NCBI GenBank assembly: GCA_020891255.1
Contig: BQFW01000014.1
Span: 1,488,001-1,552,000, forward strand
Length of the DNA: 64,000 nucleotides
Direction of reading: 5' to 3'
Source of the DNA: Entomortierella parvispora E1425
Taxonomy: Eukaryota; Fungi; Mortierellomycota
The position numbers and the translations under genes were made by a program. Positions 9,855 through 64,000 of the stretch are shown in pieces. Every line of letters starts with the position of its first letter. Position 1 is the stretch's first letter. Below the pieces are notes generated by a model. That model did no database searches, was not told where the DNA came from, and worked only from the letters and a program-made list of their open reading frames with translations.

Positions 9855-12800
9855 ATGGACATGGATCTGGAGCAGTTTGAGCTCCTCGAGTTGGTCAACA
9901 AGATTAACAATGAGCTCATGAACCACACTGGTGTTGACGACAAGACTGTCGGTAAGTCAGCACGCTGTTCTGTGGATCACAAGCTGCCATCCAAAGTTCA
10001 ACTCACTCTCTTAATACTTTTGCAACCATTCTTGTCACTCTAGCTGAATTTGTAATCCATCTTCATGAAGAATCGCCCGACTACTCTACTTTCAAGGCAG
10101 AGGTCCAGGAAGTCGGCGACTTTTCTGATTCGTTTGTTGGAAACCTGGATCGACTCATCAGGACAATGCATCCCAAAAATAAGAAGGTCGCCGAGCCCGC
10201 CCCCGTAGACAAGGCCGCCATTGCAGACGAGAAGAAACATCGATTCCCAGGATTGGCACTCCCCAACAACACCGAGTGGTCTGGCAAGGAGGATGTCAAA
10301 GACAAGGCCGTCGTCAACGACATCATGTCTGAATTCGAAAATATGCTCGAGTCGACAAAACAAGAGGCCAGGAAGAGAAGCCGTAGCAGAAGCCCAGACA
10401 GGAGACGAGTTCGTTCCCGATCAAGAGAGGACTATAGTCGGGATAGCTATGGGCGTGGACGTGGACGTGGGCGCAGCCGCAGCCGTAGTCGCAGTCCTTA
10501 TCGACGAGGGGACGATAGAAGACGAGACAACGGCAGAGATAATGGCAGATCGTCCATGGACGACTCACCTCTACTTTACAAGATCTACTCAGGCAGAGTC
10601 GCCAACATCAAACCCTTTGGTGCCTTTGTAACCTTGGACGGCGTACGAGGAAAGGTTGAAGGAATGGTGCATATTTCCATGATGCAAAACACCCGTGTCA
10701 ACGACGTCTCAGAAGTTGTCAAGAGGAATGATGTTGTCAAGGTCAAGGTCATGTCTGTGACCTCAACAAAGGTGTCGCTTTCTATGAAGGATGTAGATCA
10801 AAGGACTGGCAAGGATCTGTCACCTCATTTGCGCATCAGGACAAAGGAAGAGATGGAGCAAGATGCTGCCCGCAACCCAGATAGACCTTCTTCGACTACT
10901 GTGCCCATTATCGAGGACGACGAGCCAAAGTCGTCTAAATGGAAACGCCTGTCTTCTCCTGATCGATTCGAAATCAAACAACTGATTGCATCCGGCGCCC
11001 TGAGTGCCGCCGACCATCCAGGTATCGACGAGGACATTGGAAGGATAGACAACATGGAGGCAGAAGAGGAGCTTGATATTGAATTGGTTGAGGATGAGCC
11101 ACTGTTCTTGAAGGGACAAGCTAGGCACGCCTTGGATCTGAGTCCAGTCAAGGTCGTCAAGGCTCCCGATGGTACCCTGAATAGAGCGGCTCTTTCTGGA
11201 GCAGCTTTGGCGAAGGAGAGAAAGGAGCTGAAGCAATCTGAGGTCAATGCAGAGTACGACTCTGTTCCAAAGGATATCAACAAGCCATGGCTGGATCCTA
11301 TGCCCGAGCCAGGAGAGCGCAATTTCGCCCAGGATCTGAGAGGAAGCGCAGCCAGCGGTAAAGCCGGACAGATGCCAGAGTGGAAGATGAACACCTTTGG
11401 CAAGGCCACCACCTACGGTAGGATCACCGATATGAGCATGCAGCAGCAGCGCGAGTCGCTTCCCATTTTCAAACTTCGCGAGCAACTTGTCAAGGCTGTC
11501 AGGGACAATCAAATTCTGGTCGTCATCGGAGAAACTGGTTCTGGAAAAACGACACAGCTGACACAGTACCTTGCAGAAGAAGGGTTCACCACGAACGGCC
11601 GTATTGGATGCACACAGCCCCGTCGAGTGGCCGCCATGTCTGTTGCCAAGCGTGTGGCAGAGGAGGTTGGTTGTCGTCTGGGTCAGGAAGTTGGATATAC
11701 TATTCGTTTCGAGGACTGTACCAGCCCAGACACAAGGATCAAGTACATGACAGACGGAATGTTGATGAGAGAGTGTCTCGTGGATTCTGCCATGTCAGCG
11801 TACTCTGTTATTATTCTGGACGAGGCTCACGAACGCACAGTCAGCACCGACGTTCTTTTTGGACTTTTGAAACAGGCAACCAAAAAGAGAAGGGACTTGA
11901 AGATCATTGTCACTTCCGCCACCATGGACGCCGAAAAGTTCTCTTCCTACTTTTTCGACTGCCCCATTTTCACCATCCCTGGTCGCACCTACCCTGTGGA
12001 AATCTTGTACACCAAAGACCCGGAATCTGACTACTTGGATGCTTCCCTTATTACCGTCATGCAAATTCACTTGTCGGAGCCAGCTGGAGATATTCTTTTG
12101 TTTTTGACTGGTCAAGAGGAGATTGATACCGCCGCCGAGATTCTATACGAGCGTATGAAAGCTCTAGGACCAATGGTGCCCGAGTTGATTATCCTGCCCG
12201 TGTACAGTGCCCTTCCATCAGAGATGCAATCAAGGATTTTCGAGCCTACACCACCCGGAGCCCGTAAAGTCGTTATCGCTACCAACGTTGCCGAGACAAG
12301 TATTACCATCGATGGTATTTACTATGTGGTCGATCCTGGATTTGTGAAGCAGAATGCTTATGACGCCAAGCTAGGAATGGATTCTTTGATTGTGACGCCT
12401 ATTTCACAAGCACAGGCTCGCCAGCGCTCTGGACGTGCTGGACGCACAGGTCCAGGAAAGTGCTATCGTCTTTACACCGAAGCTGCCTACCGAAACGAGA
12501 TGATGCCCAACCCAGTGCCCGAAATCCAGCGCACCAATTTGGCCATGATTGTCTTGACCCTCAAGGCTATGGGTATCAACGATCTGATCAATTTTGATTT
12601 CATGGACCCTCCACCTGTCCAGACCTTGTTGACGGCTTTGGAACAGCTATTTGCACTCTCTGCATTGGATTCTGAGGGTCTTCTCACTCGTCTCGGCCGT
12701 AAGATGGCGGTCTTCCCCATGGAGCCCCCACTTGCAAAGATGTTGATTCTGTCTGCAGACCTCAACTGCTCGGAGGAAATCTTGACGATTGTTTCCATGC

Positions 12801-13539
12801 TCAGTGTCCAAAACGTATTCCATCGACCCAAGGAAAAGCAAGCACAGGCTGACAGCAAAAAGGCCAAGTTCCACCAGCCTGAAGGAGATCATTTGACGTT
12901 GCTCACAGTGTACAATGCTTGGAAGGCATCCAAGTTTTCCAACCCATGGTGCGTGGATAACTTTATTCAGGCTCGAGGCATGAAGCGGGCAGCGGATGTC
13001 AGGAAACAGCTTTTGGGATACATGGATCGTTATAATCAAGATGTGGTTTCTTGCGGAAAGAACTACACAAAGGTCAGGAGAGCGCTCTGTGGAGGCTTCT
13101 TCCGTCATGCGGCCAAGAAGGATCCCCAAGAAGGCTACAAGACTCTGGTAGAGGGCACGCCAGTGTATATTCACCCAAGCAGTTCATTATTCAACAAGAA
13201 CCCTGAATGGTATGTTGGAGTCAAAGCGTGTCCAGGATTGTGGATGAGCAATATGACTGAGGAGCTTTTCAACTGACAAGTGCTATGTTTTATTGCAATA
13301 GGGTGATCTACCATGAACTGGTTATGACAACAAAGGAATACATGCGAGAGGTGACAGCGATTGAGCCTAAGTGGCTCACTGAGGCTGCGCCTACGTTCTT
13401 CAAGGTCGCTGATGCCAACAAAATTTCACGCCGCAAGCGCCAAGAAAAGATTGAGCCGCTCTTCAACCGCTACGAGAAGCCAAACGAGTGGCGTCTCAGT
13501 CGCCTCAAGACAGGCAGTCGTGCGTCACAGACGTTCTAA
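9855..13539 (+). CDS. PRP22: Pre-mRNA splicing DEAH-box helicase Prp22/DHX8
   Basis: RS-rich region, S1 domain ([13 protein letters not shown]), [28 protein letters not shown], conserved C-terminus WRLSR. Confidence 0.96.
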
Positions 13540-58269: not shown

Positions 58270-59824
58270 TCAGAACCGACTGAGATTCGACTGGTCTGCG
58301 TGATATTCATCTGCAAAGGGAGACTCCGCTGCCTTCATGGAGCTCTTTTCTAGGTTGGCGACCCTTGCGCACGCATCCCAATCCAGCCATGTCGTGCAGT
58401 TGGCACATCGAACTGCGTTGATAGGGATACCCTTCAAACAATAGTCGCACTTCTTCTCTGTCACCTCTGTCTTTGTGTTTCTTCCCATTTGATAAACTAA
58501 TGAAAAATAACAAGTTGGTCATTGTTAGATACTGTGAGATGACAAAGAGACGGGGTGCGAGATGACAGACGAAGCGATAATCGTGTTTCTTACTTTTCAC
58601 AACGATAAAAACGCATCCAGAGATGATGATAAAGTTGATAACAGTCTGAACAAAGTTGCCCCAGTTCCAAGTGATGTCGCCTGCATTTTTGGCTTGGAGT
58701 CGAGTAGCGTACTATGATTTTGTCAAGGATAGTAGATCTGTCAGCTTCTTTTGCTCTCTTAGCTTGAACCGCATAAAACTGGGACATGAGGCCTTTACAT
58801 TTTCAGGAGGGTTTGCAGCGTTTCGGCGCAGGGTGATGAAGTTCTCATCCAAGTTCTTTCTCGAGGCCAGCGCAATCACTGGGGTGATGATATCGGTCAC
58901 CAAGCTTGTAACAATCTAAAAAATCCAAGTGTTGTCAGCTGTCTGTTCGAGATGATCTTTATCTACATCCTTCTCTTCACTTGTTCCAAGTCAAGGCGCT
59001 GAAAGTAGACCAACCCAGAAAAAAGACTTACAGCGGTAAAAGCAGCACCTGTTGTGGTTGACCATGATGATTGTGAGGTGGGGCAAAATAACGGGATTGA
59101 GAGCAAAAAACATAAATCAGGTCAACAACGTTTTCCTGTGGTTCTTTTTGTCCCTCCGACCGCTCTCTTTTTGTGCGTTCAGTCCTCTTTCGTCCAAATG
59201 AACGACAGCCGACAGAGGCACCGAAGGACTTACCGACAACAACGGCCACGGCCAAATCAACAACGTTGCCTCGATCCATGAACTTGCGGTAGTCTGCAAA
59301 GAATCCTGTGCCGTACCTGACCACAGCCACGTTGTTTAGCTTGGTACCCACTGCCGCCACTCCGTTCCCGGCTAGATACACAACAATAAAAGAAGACTCG
59401 TTGAGAGGCTGCAAGTCGACGACCACTTTTTTCACCTTTTTTTTTGGTATGTGTGTGATGACTCGGCCAAGACAGGCTGGCTCTTACCACGAGTGTATCC
59501 TCCCTTGACAGCCTGAGCTCCATGAGTGACTCCACCGACGACGGCCTGAGTACCGTGAGTGACTCCACCAACGACGGCCTGAGTGCCGTGGGCGATGCCT
59601 CCAACCACGGCTCTGGCGGGGTTCAAGTTCCTCTTCTTGGGCCGCGTAGGGTCCTGCTGTTTCTCAAAGCTATCGGTATAGTCCTGATGGTCGTAGGCCT
59701 GCTGCGAGTTTTGGAGAGGATGATAGTCTTCCTCTCTGTTCTGTGGACGGTAAGAGGACGAAGGAGGGGCGATTCCGCTTGGCTGTCCTCTGGCGGACTG
59801 GTCGTAGTTGTTGTAGTTGCTCAT
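58270..59824 (-). CDS. mscL: Large-conductance mechanosensitive channel MscL homolog, spliced, with N-terminal repeats and C-terminal zinc ribbon
   Basis: Spliced product [43 protein letters not shown] (S1 helix and TM1), WNWGNFVQTVINFIIISGCVFIVVK (TM2), then KKCDYCLKGIPINAVRCANCTTWL. Confidence 0.9.
59511..59609 (-). repeat. Three 33-bp tandem coding repeats (11 aa) in the MscL N-terminus
   Basis: Units 59511-59543, 59544-59576, 59577-59609 encode VVGGIAHGTQA / VVGGVTHGTQA / VVGGVTHGAQA. Confidence 0.9.
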
Positions 59825-60226
59825 GGGTGGGTGTTTCCCTATTTTCGTTGAATCCGAGAAAGGGAGAATGAGGGGCAGGATGAAGACGAGTGATGAGATG
59901 AGATGAGACGAGAGAGGATGAGCAATGAGGCCATGAAGCCATGAAGCAGTGCAAAGCAAACGCCCATGAGAAACAACACAGTGGTGGGCGTTGGATGGTC
60001 TTGTATTATTAAAAATAAGCTCGATGGGGCCGTTTGATTGGCTGGACCTGGTGCCTGGGCGTGCGCCCTCTTCCCCGGGTTTCCCTGCCTGATTTGCCAC
60101 CAAGAGAGGCAATGCGCACTGGCAACAAATCGGCTATTGTAGAGAACTGAAGAAGAAATGCAAGGAATCATCCTCTGGAAGTCCTTCGATTTATTTCTCT
60201 TGTTGTGCCACAGGCGATGAGGGAAT

Positions 60227-60976
60227 CTATCGGCGAGACGTCAGCATCGGAGCCAGTACACTTTTCACACGCTCCAGAATACCCTTTCCTGCATTCAAAA
60301 ACTTTTCCAAGCTGCTTGAAAACGTTTGCAGGGCCGCCTCGGTGGTAGTTTCCTTCATGGACAGCACTGGAAGAAGGGGTGATCTAGGTAGGGCCATCAA
60401 TTGTGCCTCCAACTTTGACAAGGATTCTAGTCGCTCCTTCCTCCGGTAGGAAGTATCATCAGCATCGAAAGGGAAATCACAGGTGATGACGGGGATGTCC
60501 CCAAAGGTCTGCTTGATGATCTCTTGGTAGCGGGTGGCCCACATGGGGTTGGGACAGTGAGTCACCACCAGGACAAAGTTGGCTTCCGCGCCTTGGAATG
60601 TTGACTTGAAGAGTTTAAAGAGTTCATCCTGCTCCATAGTCTTCAGACGTCCCTGTTGAACAACGTAGGCAATGTAATGAAATCCACGTTGGCCCTCTTC
60701 GAGAACGCGGCCGAGTAGTCCCATGGCAGAATCTACGGAACGGTCACCTTTTCCTTGCAGTTCACCAAGACCGACGGTGTCGCAAGCTGTCCAGTCGCGA
60801 CCGTCGACAACCTTGACTTCAGATGTGACGCTGGCGGCGCTGTCACTGACCTCACGGATGTTCTTGACAAAAAGATCGCCCTGAACAAGCATGTTGGTAA
60901 GTGAAGACTTTCCAGTGCCCATTTTCCCGACAAATATAATCTTCTTGTTGTAGAGGTTTTGTTCGTTTGGAGTCAT
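60227..60976 (-). CDS. Intronless small AIG1/GIMAP-like TRAFAC GTPase (about 249 aa)
   Basis: G1 GKMGTGKS, G2 SAASVT, G3 DTVG, YVVQQGRL, G4-like VVTHC; short amphipathic C-terminal helix. Confidence 0.8.
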   Translation of the reverse strand: MTPNEQNLYNKKIIFVGKMGTGKSSLTNMLVQGDLFVKNIREVSDSAASVTSEVKVVDGRDWTACDTVGLGELQGKGDRSVDSAMGLLGRVLEEGQRGFHYIAYVVQQGRLKTMEQDELFKLFKSTFQGAEANFVLVVTHCPNPMWATRYQEIIKQTFGDIPVITCDFPFDADDTSYRRKERLESLSKLEAQLMALPRSPLLPVLSMKETTTEAALQTFSSSLEKFLNAGKGILERVKSVLAPMLTSRR

Positions 60977-61131
60977 GGTTATTCGGTGGGTGCTGGGACG
61001 TTCTTTCGAAAAGAGGAAGGGAGGAGAGAACAAGAGGAGCCACCGACACCTGCGAGCAACAAGCCATGACAACATGTTGTGGGAAAGCTCAACTTTTGTT
61101 GTTGCACGCCCGCGCCCTGACTGTCCCGAGG

Positions 61132-61163
<32 letters not shown>

Positions 61164-61335
61164 GGCAAAGCAAAGGACAAGTTTTTGTTTTCTGTTTTTT
61201 TTCTGTTCCTCACTCTTACTTCCCACACTAAAAATGTACGCCCTGCCCCCATCATCTGTAAGCCCAGCGCGATGCTCTTGAGATTATATTACCTGCCTGT
61301 TCACAACTCTTCAACTCATCTACCAAATAGCAGTT

Positions 61336-62919
61336 ATGACACGAACCCCTTCCTCAAAGTCCCATTTGGCTGATTTTCCAATTGCATGTAACGTGTTGCT
61401 CATCGGTGAGACTCAGGCTGGCAAGAGCACTTTCGTTGAAGCTGTCAGGCAATATGCCAACCTGAATCACGTCATCGACAGGACCAGAATCGGCCATGGC
61501 AATGTCTCCTTTACAACGGAGGTCACCTGCACTCGCGTTGAGACTGACCTCCCAAGCTACGAGGTCACGGAAGATCTGGAAGAATATCTGCAGCCGGAGG
61601 TTATCAACATAGATTCTCTCCTGGACGAGAAAGGTGACTGGGAGGACTATCAAGAAAGGATTAATAGGCGCAGGGACTTGAGGCTGAAGCATGTAGCTCC
61701 TGATTCTAGTGCGGTGTACCATTTCAACTTGTTTGATACCCCGGGACTCAATGACACGAATGGAGAGGACGAAACCCATGTAAACACCATATTTAGAGCA
61801 TTGAGAACCTTGGACCAGATTCACTTGGTCCTCGTCATGGTGGGCCCCAGCGCTTTCACATCTGGCTTCAGGGCTGCCCTTAAGTGTTACATAGACGTTT
61901 TCCCAGAGTTTCAAGGCGCAATTGCATTTGTACACACCAAAATTGATTACGCCGACCTTCATCCTGACCGAAAGGACTTTCACAGCATGTTCCAAGAAAA
62001 GAAGGAAATCCTTCACACCATCATGGGCCGCGGCAGCTGTCAGCACTTCATGATCAATTGCGATTTTGAGTCCACCAAACCCATCCGGGCTAATATCACT
62101 CTCAACACAATCCGACAAATCTTGTCCTTGGCCCCGTACAACGAGCCCATCGCCATCAACAAACTTTCTTTGCACAAGACAGAAAGGATGTTGGTCTTGG
62201 ACAGGATTATTATCAACAAGTACACCGCTATGATCGACGCCATTGTACAGACCCTTGGAACGAAGAATGTTTTACAATCAAGCGTTTTGAGGCAATCCTA
62301 TGAGCTCAAGAAACTACTGAACAACCTGCGGGCCGAGAAGTTGGAGGGAGAACAATTCATTGCTGAACACGACACGCAAAATCTTGTCATGATCTACGAG
62401 AATCGATTCGACGAGCACTGGAGATTGATACACGTCAACCGCCCCCACTCTATGGCCTTCCCTAGCCAGCATCTTACCATACGGAAAGTAATGCTGCTGC
62501 AAGAATTCACAGAGATCTCATCGGAGAAAGGAGGAAAAGACCATGCATTCTGGACGATCGATTTCAAGCGCGCATCATACAAAAATGGTGTTCTTCACGC
62601 CAAACTTTATACTACAAGTGCGGACAAGTACCGATGGGCCATCTCGACAAGGAAAACTCGAGCTGTTTGCCTGGAGTCAGAGATTCCAGAGGCTGAGGAT
62701 AGTTTGAAACGGCACAACGAGTTGTACGGGAGTCAACAAGAAGACATTGATCAGCTAATTAAGCAAAACAGCTTATACACGCAAATGCTGTCCTTGGCCA
62801 GAAAGGACAGGCTGCATCCGGACATCTTTGCTCAGATGGTTGACCAAAGAGCATACATAGGAGAAGTCGACGAAAATGCCCTCAGTGTGGAAAGGGTCTA
62901 TTTGCAAATCGTTCAATAA
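61336..62919 (+). CDS. Intronless 527-aa TRAFAC GTPase with C-terminal helical hairpin and beta-rich insert
   Basis: G1 GETQAGKS, G2 SFTT, G3 DTPG, G4 HTKID; C-terminal half has two coiled-coil-like segments flanking a W/F/Y-rich block. Confidence 0.85.
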   Translation: MTRTPSSKSHLADFPIACNVLLIGETQAGKSTFVEAVRQYANLNHVIDRTRIGHGNVSFTTEVTCTRVETDLPSYEVTEDLEEYLQPEVINIDSLLDEKGDWEDYQERINRRRDLRLKHVAPDSSAVYHFNLFDTPGLNDTNGEDETHVNTIFRALRTLDQIHLVLVMVGPSAFTSGFRAALKCYIDVFPEFQGAIAFVHTKIDYADLHPDRKDFHSMFQEKKEILHTIMGRGSCQHFMINCDFESTKPIRANITLNTIRQILSLAPYNEPIAINKLSLHKTERMLVLDRIIINKYTAMIDAIVQTLGTKNVLQSSVLRQSYELKKLLNNLRAEKLEGEQFIAEHDTQNLVMIYENRFDEHWRLIHVNRPHSMAFPSQHLTIRKVMLLQEFTEISSEKGGKDHAFWTIDFKRASYKNGVLHAKLYTTSADKYRWAISTRKTRAVCLESEIPEAEDSLKRHNELYGSQQEDIDQLIKQNSLYTQMLSLARKDRLHPDIFAQMVDQRAYIGEVDENALSVERVYLQIVQ

Positions 62920-63046
62920 AAATTCGATAACTTGATAAGTGGTATTCCCCCCCCCTAAAAAAAAAGGCCAGGGAGGAATGAGAACCAAAACACCATGTGA
63001 GTGGTGCCCTCTAACTCCTCATCATCAGGCGGAAGGGTATGGTTTA

Positions 63047-64000
63047 TTATTCCTCACGCTGACTCTGCAGTTCTAACAAAGAGAATCCATGCACCACTTC
63101 TTGCAAATAAACCTTCTCGACGACCTCTTGCAAATAAATTTTCTCGATCTCTATGGCTGCCTCAGCGTGGTCTTTGGAGTAAACCCCACTCGATACTAGA
63201 GCCAGGAATCGAGCGATACTCACAGAAGGTTCCTCCGCCTTGGCTGTCATATCGGTTCCGAGTTTACTCGTTTGCTGGAGCACCTTGATCTCTTGAAGCA
63301 GAGATGAGTTCGTCTCTTTATAATCGTTTAAATCCTGCAAAATCATCGGACGATCGCGTACTGCAGCATCAAGCCTTTCCCGGGCCCTTGAGATATCGTC
63401 TTTGTACCTCTCCAGAGACATTGTATAGTATTTGGCGGTTAGCAATCCGTTTCGGTAGGCGTCCCGTTTGAAGTCAATCTCGCAGAAATTGAAGCCAAGT
63501 CCACCTCTAATGCCTTCAATCTTCATGTTGTCGTTTGTAATGACCAGGTAACGAATGGGGTATGCTTGAGCGGGAAACGTTAAGGTTTTACGACGAAACC
63601 AATCAATAGCCCTCCAAACACCGGGAAACGCCTGTTCGTCAATGAGGACAGGTTCTGTCGTGCACACTGCTTTGGTATAGGCTAGCTCCCGAACTATAGT
63701 TGCCTCGATTGTGTTGATTGCCGTGTTGAGAACGGCAATGTCTTGCAAGGCATGGCCCTGCAGGGTGTTCTTGGATTCTAGAGTCCGGTTGCCGGCATCT
63801 AAGGTTGCCCTGTACTTGTTGTAGATAATCCTGTCGACGGTCTTCATTTTTGAAGTTTTGAAAACTCTCTCAGCGTCCATGAATACTGGCAGGTTCGTTC
63901 GTGCCTGCAATAGAATTTGTCGGATGGTGTTCAGGGTAATGTATCTTCTTATAGGCTTTGTCGTCTCAAAGTCGCAGTCAATCACGATGTGCCTACAGCT
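63047..64000 (-). CDS. Paralog of the 61336 GTPase, C-terminal half (5' part beyond window)
   Basis: Collinear shared blocks: IDCDFETTKPIRRYITLNTIRQIL vs INCDFESTKPIRANITLNTIRQIL; DRIIYNKY vs DRIIINKY; IDFKRDAYRNGLLTAK vs IDFKRASYKNGVLHAK; EKIYLQ vs ERVYLQ. Confidence 0.85.
   Translation of the reverse strand, partial: SCRHIVIDCDFETTKPIRRYITLNTIRQILLQARTNLPVFMDAERVFKTSKMKTVDRIIYNKYRATLDAGNRTLESKNTLQGHALQDIAVLNTAINTIEATIVRELAYTKAVCTTEPVLIDEQAFPGVWRAIDWFRRKTLTFPAQAYPIRYLVITNDNMKIEGIRGGLGFNFCEIDFKRDAYRNGLLTAKYYTMSLERYKDDISRARERLDAAVRDRPMILQDLNDYKETNSSLLQEIKVLQQTSKLGTDMTAKAEEPSVSIARFLALVSSGVYSKDHAEAAIEIEKIYLQEVVEKVYLQEVVHGFSLLELQSQREE

Follow-up and report, generated by a model that had tools for sequence, protein, structure and literature searches.

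The window considered here is a stretch of 64,000 nucleotides from the fungus Entomortierella parvispora E1425 (assembly GCA_020891255.1, positions 1,488,001 to 1,552,000 of the 2.26-Mb contig BQFW01000014.1), the last part of which enters a cluster of GTPase genes. The original prediction had described three such genes, and three are indeed found in the window; however, when the contig was followed beyond the window end, the cluster proved to contain five consecutive genes in the order s1–A–B–C–s2, two of them encoding small and three encoding large GTPases, since a 733-residue paralogue and a small GTPase of 246 residues lie past the edge. Genes beyond the edge were read from the same contig (locus L001), where the window coordinate equals 74730 minus the L001 coordinate. 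The gene s1 (60227–60976, minus strand) encodes a small AIG1/GIMAP-type GTPase of 249 amino acids (P0042); its open reading frame extends from 60227 to 61255 on that strand, the first 93 codons being read-through upstream of the called coding sequence. An intergenic region of 359 bp (60977–61335) separates s1 from the divergently oriented gene A (61336–62919, plus strand), whose coding sequence, free of introns, specifies a large GTPase of 527 amino acids (P0001). The spacer between A and B, which lie tail-to-tail, measures 127 bp (62920–63046), and B (63047–64729, minus strand; 560 amino acids, P0020) has its C-terminal 317 codons inside the window (63047–64000). Outside the window are C (about 65149–67350, plus strand; 733 amino acids, EMPS_10466) and s2 (about 68336–69076, plus strand). 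Hence, s1/A and B/C constitute two pairs transcribed divergently. The head-to-head placement that had been proposed for s1 and A agrees with these coordinates, the Pfam AIG1 score of s1 is 32.1 bits (above the cut-off of 27), and the tail-to-tail spacing of A and its diverged paralogue was exact, the two proteins sharing 36% identity over 288 amino acids in the window part of B (BLASTP E 5e-49) and 42% over 520 amino acids when the full 560 residues of B are compared.

For each of the five GTPase genes, multiplying the product length by three and adding three gives the length of the gene; all five coding sequences are therefore intron-free, unlike the flanking genes: the neighbouring MscL gene takes 1555 bp for 317 amino acids and the FAD_binding_3 neighbour takes 2150 bp for 545 amino acids, both with introns. 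The GC content of the cluster is similar to that of the neighbouring genes. The absence of introns, as first claimed for this locus, is nevertheless established for the coding regions only, since a candidate intron in the 5'-untranslated region (5'-UTR) of A occupies 61258–61330 on the plus strand (GTAAGC ... AAATAG) and ends 5 nt before the ATG. An element of this form, GTAAG(T/C)...ATAG, about 73–80 nt long, is present a few bases upstream of the ATG of A in four of four species (E. parvispora, two Linnemannia species, and Podila; in L002, L003, and L004 just before position 10001 or 9829) and, judging from its letters, may be a 5'-UTR intron. Moreover, the middle of the s1/A intergenic region carries a stretch of about 30 T (61135–61165), with shorter T runs at the equivalent place in Linnemannia, which probably serves to keep nucleosomes off a bidirectional promoter, and a C/T-rich block in the same region is kept in the four species.

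All five products are divergent GTPases of the septin-like/AIG1–GIMAP–Toc group, and A, B, and C are predicted to share a dynamin-like build, in which the G domain, extended by a long stretch inserted between G2 and G3, precedes a helical hairpin, or "stalk", that bears a beta tip. This architecture of a GTPase with a hairpin, which had been anticipated for the paralogues, was recovered in a model of A built by AlphaFold2 from a 34-sequence alignment (mean predicted local distance difference test, pLDDT, 86; predicted template modelling score, pTM, 0.83). The G domain covers residues 16–270 (61381–62145, plus strand) and, in the predicted model, includes an acidic G2–G3 insert of about 68 amino acids (residues 61–128), the G domain as a whole being acidic as well (net charge −14). 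It contains the motifs G1 GETQAGKS, G3 DTPGLND, and G4 HTKID, which, with G4 written as HTKxD, are conserved across A and B and invariant in the family alignments. The orthologues of C in Linnemannia and Podila have HTRVD as G4, and C of E. parvispora has HTRVN; this last protein (L001:7380-9581) also ends in a low-complexity tail of about 190 amino acids with EEVKR-like repeats. Against Pfam, A passes the Dynamin_N model at the border (28.2 bits, cut-off 27), scores below the cut-off of 27 for AIG1 (18.6 bits), and matches MMR_HSR1 more weakly than Dynamin_N as well. The Septin model gave no convincing match, s1 reaching only E 0.14 (11.8 bits) and A not being listed for it.

At the level of folds, VIA-align placed the G domain of A closest to Toc33 (Z 16.6) and GIMAP7 (Z 15.3), with Mitofusin, Fzo1, and SynDLP at about 12.5. 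In a Foldseek search of the PDB, the top match of A was the bacterial dynamin-like protein BDLP (E 8.6e-8, with a template modelling score, TM, of only 0.22), followed by GIMAP7 (E 3.5e-6), DLP1/2, IniA, and Toc34 (E 8e-6), and all ten best clusters among the ESM Atlas neighbours belonged to the AIG1 family. Because of these three results, the G domain of A is classified as a septin-like domain of the AIG1/Toc type with a dynamin-like insert. The resemblance to bacterial dynamin-like pairs (BDLP 2j68/2j69, Campylobacter DLP1/DLP2 5oxf, IniA 6j72, and LeoA/LeoBC of the anti-phage system "Dynamins") lies in the order of parts, a G domain with a long G2–G3 insert followed by a hairpin with a tip, in the adjacency of the paralogous genes, and in the Dynamin_N score just over its cut-off. 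However, the full-length TM of BDLP, DLP1/2, and IniA to A is 0.19–0.24, A is much shorter than these proteins, and neither a paddle nor a transmembrane segment is predicted in it.

In the predicted model of the C-terminal module of A (residues 272–527; 62149–62916, plus strand), residues 283–345 and 433–489 form the helical hairpin, residues 350–427 (62383–62616, plus strand) form a six-stranded beta tip module at its end, and residues 495–526 provide closing helices; when the C-terminal 256 residues were modelled alone, confidence remained high (pLDDT 87). This module matched nothing in Pfam and, by sequence, nothing in the PDB, while comparison with PDB folds (Foldseek, and VIA-align run wide) returned generic coiled coils and hairpins only, with Z at most 9.1 and no chain of the dynamin family, such as a dynamin-, BDLP-, or mitofusin-type stalk. 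Among AlphaFold DB clusters, just three entries contain it, namely G1X972, A0A7C8P0U4, and B3ERE7. The first two are taken by us to come from nematode-trapping fungi of the Orbiliomycetes, and the third is presumably a GIMAP-like RING protein of Amoebophilus asiaticus. G1X972 (536 amino acids) is similar over nearly the whole length (TM 0.65 on both sides over residues 1–526; module alone E 9.4e-11) and B3ERE7 is similar in the C-terminal module (E 3.5e-6), although the identity of the three to A is only 11–21% and B3ERE7 has an added RING-type E3 annotation. Since it has no solved or named relative, the hairpin with its beta tip would be a new domain. The tip of A is basic (net charge +3) and rich in aromatic residues (10 of 78), with GG, W, R, K, and Y positions conserved throughout the family, and no hydrophobic segment was found outside the G core in any of the large proteins. 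The tips of A and B also show a weak Pfam likeness to MBF2 (E 0.005–0.007), and a weak likeness of fold links the tip with Hdd1-like proteins (E about 0.02, TM by hit about 0.6); this similarity to the small beta-sheet proteins Hdd1 and MBF2 of insects is probably one of fold only.

Among the small proteins, the motifs of s1 are G1 GKMGTGKS, G3 DTVG, and a degenerate G4, THCPN, and the small proteins in general have a G4 made of THC plus variable residues, with no acidic residue conserved. The small-family profile matches GIMAP7 over nearly the whole G domain (E 1.9e-9), and the HMMER alignment of the two spans G1, G3, and the hydrophobic conserved box that lies between G3 and G4 (GfhYiayV versus GPHAIVLV), a segment to which the large family was also aligned by hhalign. 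In the alignment to GIMAP7, R110 of s1 falls on the residue mapped to R103, which we take to be the catalytic finger and which was numbered by reference to the L100Q substitution carried by chain 3zjc. An Arg occupies this position in all 12 stand-alone small proteins, whereas the large family has a non-Arg residue there (hhalign probability 59%, the alignment being anchored by G3 and the conserved box). For this comparison of small with large proteins, the large-family alignment excluded the two natural fusions described below, which otherwise gave a spurious match. Moreover, most small orthologues, s2 included, have a hydrophobic C-terminal tail (mean Kyte–Doolittle value of 1.4–2.0 over an 18-mer).

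The arrangement s1(−) A(+) B(−) C(+) is shared, in order and in orientation, by Linnemannia zychae, L. hyalina, and Podila minutissima, and all five orthologue groups are found in each of these clusters, so that the linkage of small and large genes anticipated for relatives of E. parvispora was borne out. By tblastn, identity to the E. parvispora orthologue amounts to 61–64% for A, 51–56% for B, 57–66% for C, and 71–74% for s1. The position of s2 is more variable: it follows C in Podila and E. parvispora and lies on the opposite side in Linnemannia, where it has been rearranged and extra copies have been gained. In a maximum-likelihood tree, the orthologues of A and of B formed two clades (Shimodaira–Hasegawa-like approximate likelihood ratio test, SH-aLRT, 99 and 100, respectively) that are sisters at 98, each with one copy per genome; the duplication that gave A and B is therefore older than the genera compared. 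When the two Linnemannia species were compared, at a dS of 0.41–0.47, the ratio of nonsynonymous to synonymous substitution rates (dN/dS) came to 0.22 for A and 0.35 for B, while the small gene had the lowest value, 0.11. By region, constraint is tightest in the G core (0.12–0.15) and more relaxed in the G2–G3 insert and the hairpin, where values in B rise to 0.70; nowhere in this regional comparison does dN/dS exceed 1. The duplication thus appears old and maintained, as had been suggested from the divergence of the paralogues.

This stable set of five orthologue groups lies within a much larger, expanding family. Word-based and profile searches with the large and small proteins gave no named match outside Mortierellaceae, and the genera with matches were Mortierella, Entomortierella, Linnemannia, Podila, Dissophora, Gamsiella, Haplosporangium, Actinomortierella, Benniella, and Lunasporangiospora. 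Among representatives of clusters at 50% identity, an exhaustive profile search recovered 1660 at E<1e-3, 503 at E<1e-10, and 256 at E<1e-30, and 10 of 10 sampled from the best 150 of the 1660 matches were from Mortierellaceae. Family members also occur in tandem arrays and as multi-G chains, and their C-terminal regions are more variable than their G domains. The possibility of extra domains in the long members was considered and rejected, these being only chains of G domains or fused models of tandem genes. The set seems to be undescribed, as had been supposed: a literature search found no paper combining Mortierella or Mortierellaceae with GIMAP, and searches on Mortierella with AIG1 and GTPase, or on Mycoavidus with GTPase, yielded nothing on this GTPase family.

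Two further observations bring the small and large proteins together. Firstly, no BLASTP similarity is recognizable between them and, therefore, their linkage is not an artefact of recent duplication. Secondly, at a separate locus of P. minutissima (GCA_016098005.1, L005:8001-9719), one intron-free open reading frame of 1719 bp encodes a protein of 572 amino acids in which a large-type G domain, devoid of hairpin and tip, is fused to a small-type GTPase that is complete and retains its hydrophobic tail, and a second fusion of a large-type G domain with a small protein (P0038) was recovered from a Logan assembly. Because the linkage is conserved, the two types are naturally fused, and the Arg is present in the small and not in the large proteins, we infer that hetero-oligomers are formed through the G interface. 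We consider it about an even call that the five-gene cluster, conserved across Mortierellaceae, encodes one GTP-dependent hetero-oligomeric GTPase machine. In such a machine, contacts between G domains would join the five products in a GTP-dependent manner; the small subunits would sit on a membrane, perhaps anchoring the large ones, as the hydrophobic tail in most species suggests, and would dock on the Arg-less large subunits, triggering their GTP hydrolysis via the candidate arginine finger. In turn, the large subunits would use their hairpin and tip for reach and for contact with a target or membrane. Candidate processes for this activity would be the membrane dynamics of organelles or lipid droplets, or the control of intracellular bacteria.

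The proposed division of labour has precedents in two known systems. GIMAP2 and GIMAP7 (3zjc, 2xtn), vertebrate GTPases of immunity-associated proteins, share with the cluster the AIG1-type G domain with G1, a DTxG G3, and the conserved box, as well as helices that pack back on the G domain; moreover, GIMAP7 and GIMAP2 differ from each other by an Arg at the catalytic-finger position in one partner and not the other, and their genes are clustered paralogues. However, GIMAPs lack the 68-residue G2–G3 insert and the 256-residue hairpin and beta-tip module of the large proteins, and the degenerate G4 (THC...) of the small protein and the score of A below the AIG1 cut-off set the fungal proteins further apart. 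The second precedent is Toc33/34–Toc159 (2j3e, 3bb1, 1h65), which the G domain of A matches best in structure. Toc GTPases form heterotypic dimers through their G domains and use an arginine finger; their small partner is tail-anchored, and their G4 is non-canonical. Nevertheless, Toc is a plastid import system and fungi have no plastid, there is no match at the sequence level, and the C-terminal modules are unrelated.

Several observations weigh against a common machine. The small halves of both fusion proteins lack an Arg at the GIMAP7-finger position, and the arginine-finger assignment comes from sequence alignment only, with the hhalign probability of 59% quoted above. The tail of E. parvispora s1 is only weakly hydrophobic and its C-terminal helix is amphipathic. 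In the draft assembly of P. minutissima, A (L004:9829-11433) and B (11939–13360) have internal stops; C is split over two frames in the same species, and these defects are either draft-assembly errors or signs of decaying copies. Furthermore, clustering could persist merely through an origin by tandem duplication.

One alternative is that of an immune or conflict module, directed, for example, at endohyphal bacteria, mycoviruses, mycoparasites, or non-self hyphae and acting, by analogy with GIMAP, IRG, GBP, and bacterial dynamins, on membranes; it is possible but, in our judgement, doubtful. The G domains of the AIG1/GIMAP type, the huge expansion of the family in Mortierellaceae (the 256 clusters at E<1e-30), its tandem arrays and multi-G chains, and the variability of the C-terminal regions relative to the G domains are all in line with such a role, as is the biology of the host and of related organisms. 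A Mycoavidus endobacterium lives in E. parvispora E1425 (PMC8759367), AIG1-type GTPases have expanded in Glomeromycotina, where one gene is induced by co-inoculation with non-self (PMC8778642, PMC7490403), and the protein with the same C-terminal module in Amoebophilus asiaticus is GIMAP-like, Aravind and colleagues having noted GIMAP-like effectors in this bacterium (PMC3417536). The expansion in Glomeromycotina concerns an AIG1-type family in neighbouring early-diverging fungi, although its architecture combines AIG1 with Hint and no conserved five-gene cluster has been described there (PMC8778642, PMC7490403). Weak PADLOC matches to LeoBC (32.9 bits over residues 18–64) and LeoA (20.2 bits over residues 129–223) point in the same direction, but they are limited to the P-loop and the G3–G4 segment, and no full-length match to LeoA or LeoBC was obtained with PADLOC. 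Moreover, the genes of the cluster are stable 1:1 orthologues with retained synteny and dN/dS of 0.11–0.35, neither positive selection nor turnover is apparent among them, and no sensor or effector domains are attached to their products. The term "immune-type", as applied in the original prediction, reflects a family resemblance, the genes of this locus not being of the fast-turnover kind, and "membrane-acting" has its basis in the hydrophobic tail of most small subunits and the basic, aromatic-rich tip of the hairpin.

A lineage-specific housekeeping function, in which a septin- or Toc-like hetero-oligomer serves organelle, vacuole, or lipid-droplet dynamics in these oleaginous fungi with no part in conflict, is somewhat less probable still and must be counted as unlikely. 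The five single-copy orthologue groups under purifying selection across genera fit it well, and the divergent promoter pairs suggest co-regulation. GIMAP2 is located on lipid droplets and Toc33/34 are tail-anchored, both of which are congruent with a role of this kind. However, no sequence-level relatives were found outside Mortierellaceae among the named matches, and a massive expansion of the surrounding family is atypical for such machinery. Taken on the data alone, a housekeeping membrane role is equally compatible with them as an immune one.

It is likewise unlikely, to much the same degree, that there is no system at all, the genes being independent tandem paralogues that each act alone and keep their order by inertia or shared chromatin. 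A, B, and C most obviously arose by tandem duplication, a further family member (EMPS_03628) is found on another contig of the E. parvispora genome, and the rearrangement of s2 in Linnemannia, with its gain of extra copies, is in line with this view. Nevertheless, the small and large genes are too diverged for recent duplicates and yet adjacent and divergently oriented in four genomes, and both the natural fusion of a large G domain with a small protein and the distribution of the Arg at the GIMAP7-finger position argue for a functional relationship.

A more specific form of the common machine can be formulated, namely two tail-anchored arginine-finger activators and three dynamin-like hairpin subunits with a novel tip domain, serving cell-autonomous immunity or housekeeping towards intracellular bacteria as an independently arisen fungal counterpart of GIMAP, GBP, and IRG proteins; we regard this version as quite improbable. 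By comparison, a foreign origin of the cluster, taken up intron-free from a bacterium with a dynamin-like pair or from a giant virus, is very improbable, since the intron-free coding sequences amid intron-rich genes, the top Foldseek match to BDLP, and a 27% identity of the G domain to one member of a clostridial dynamin-like pair, aligned across the G2–G3 insert, are set against the lack of any full-length bacterial or viral protein match, the eukaryotic Toc and GIMAP domains as the closest G-domain folds, a GC content like that of the neighbours, a synteny across genera that would make any transfer ancient, and G1X972 as the nearest full-length structural relative. A scan of bacterial genomes gave two matches only, both at the level of the G domain (26–27%) and belonging to ordinary clostridial dynamin-like pairs, and nothing close was found in BFVD; bacterial and viral origins were rejected accordingly. 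The small and large GTPases co-occur in the clusters of the Mortierellaceae compared; no such pair was found in the bacteria scanned.

What is new here is a conserved five-gene set of the AIG1/GIMAP–Toc-like type that combines a dynamin-like build with a C-terminal module not described before. Expansions of AIG1/GIMAP GTPases recur among eukaryotes that have to cope with microbes, yet how these proteins work is poorly understood, and knowledge of them in fungi is almost nil. For their study, the cluster is a compact system, conserved and amenable to genetics, with five subunits and divergent promoter pairs, in which the natural fusion hints at which subunits touch and the presence or absence of the Arg predicts which partner activates which. 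Mortierellaceae can be cultured, some species can be transformed, and their endobacteria can be cured; therefore, both the common machine and the immune or symbiosis hypotheses are directly testable.

Concerning the surroundings of the cluster, the intron-bearing MscL gene (59028–60112 of the window) adjoins s1, as had been noted, and a DNA contig from a related strain carries MscL exons together with a piece of a small-GTPase gene. The four sequencing runs compared here came from strains 80–90% identical; their contigs had the introns replaced, not spliced out, which marks them as DNA, and within this region they extended over MscL and part of a small-GTPase gene only. However, MscL is not adjacent to the cluster in Linnemannia or Podila, and a functional link to this large-pore channel was rejected, since the adjacency is not conserved outside Entomortierella. 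On the other side, beyond s2, a gene encoding a protein of at least 1837 amino acids with no Pfam match on record occupies L001:1-5408. In L. hyalina, a gene with a Crinkler domain (PF20147; L003:929-1759) lies about 7 kb from the GTPase cluster. Finally, in a metagenome-assembled genome of an uncultured Ruminiclostridium (L007:5806-10514), a pair of dynamin-like proteins of 606 and 681 amino acids is encoded with a gene for a multi-zinc-ribbon protein of 257 amino acids between the two.

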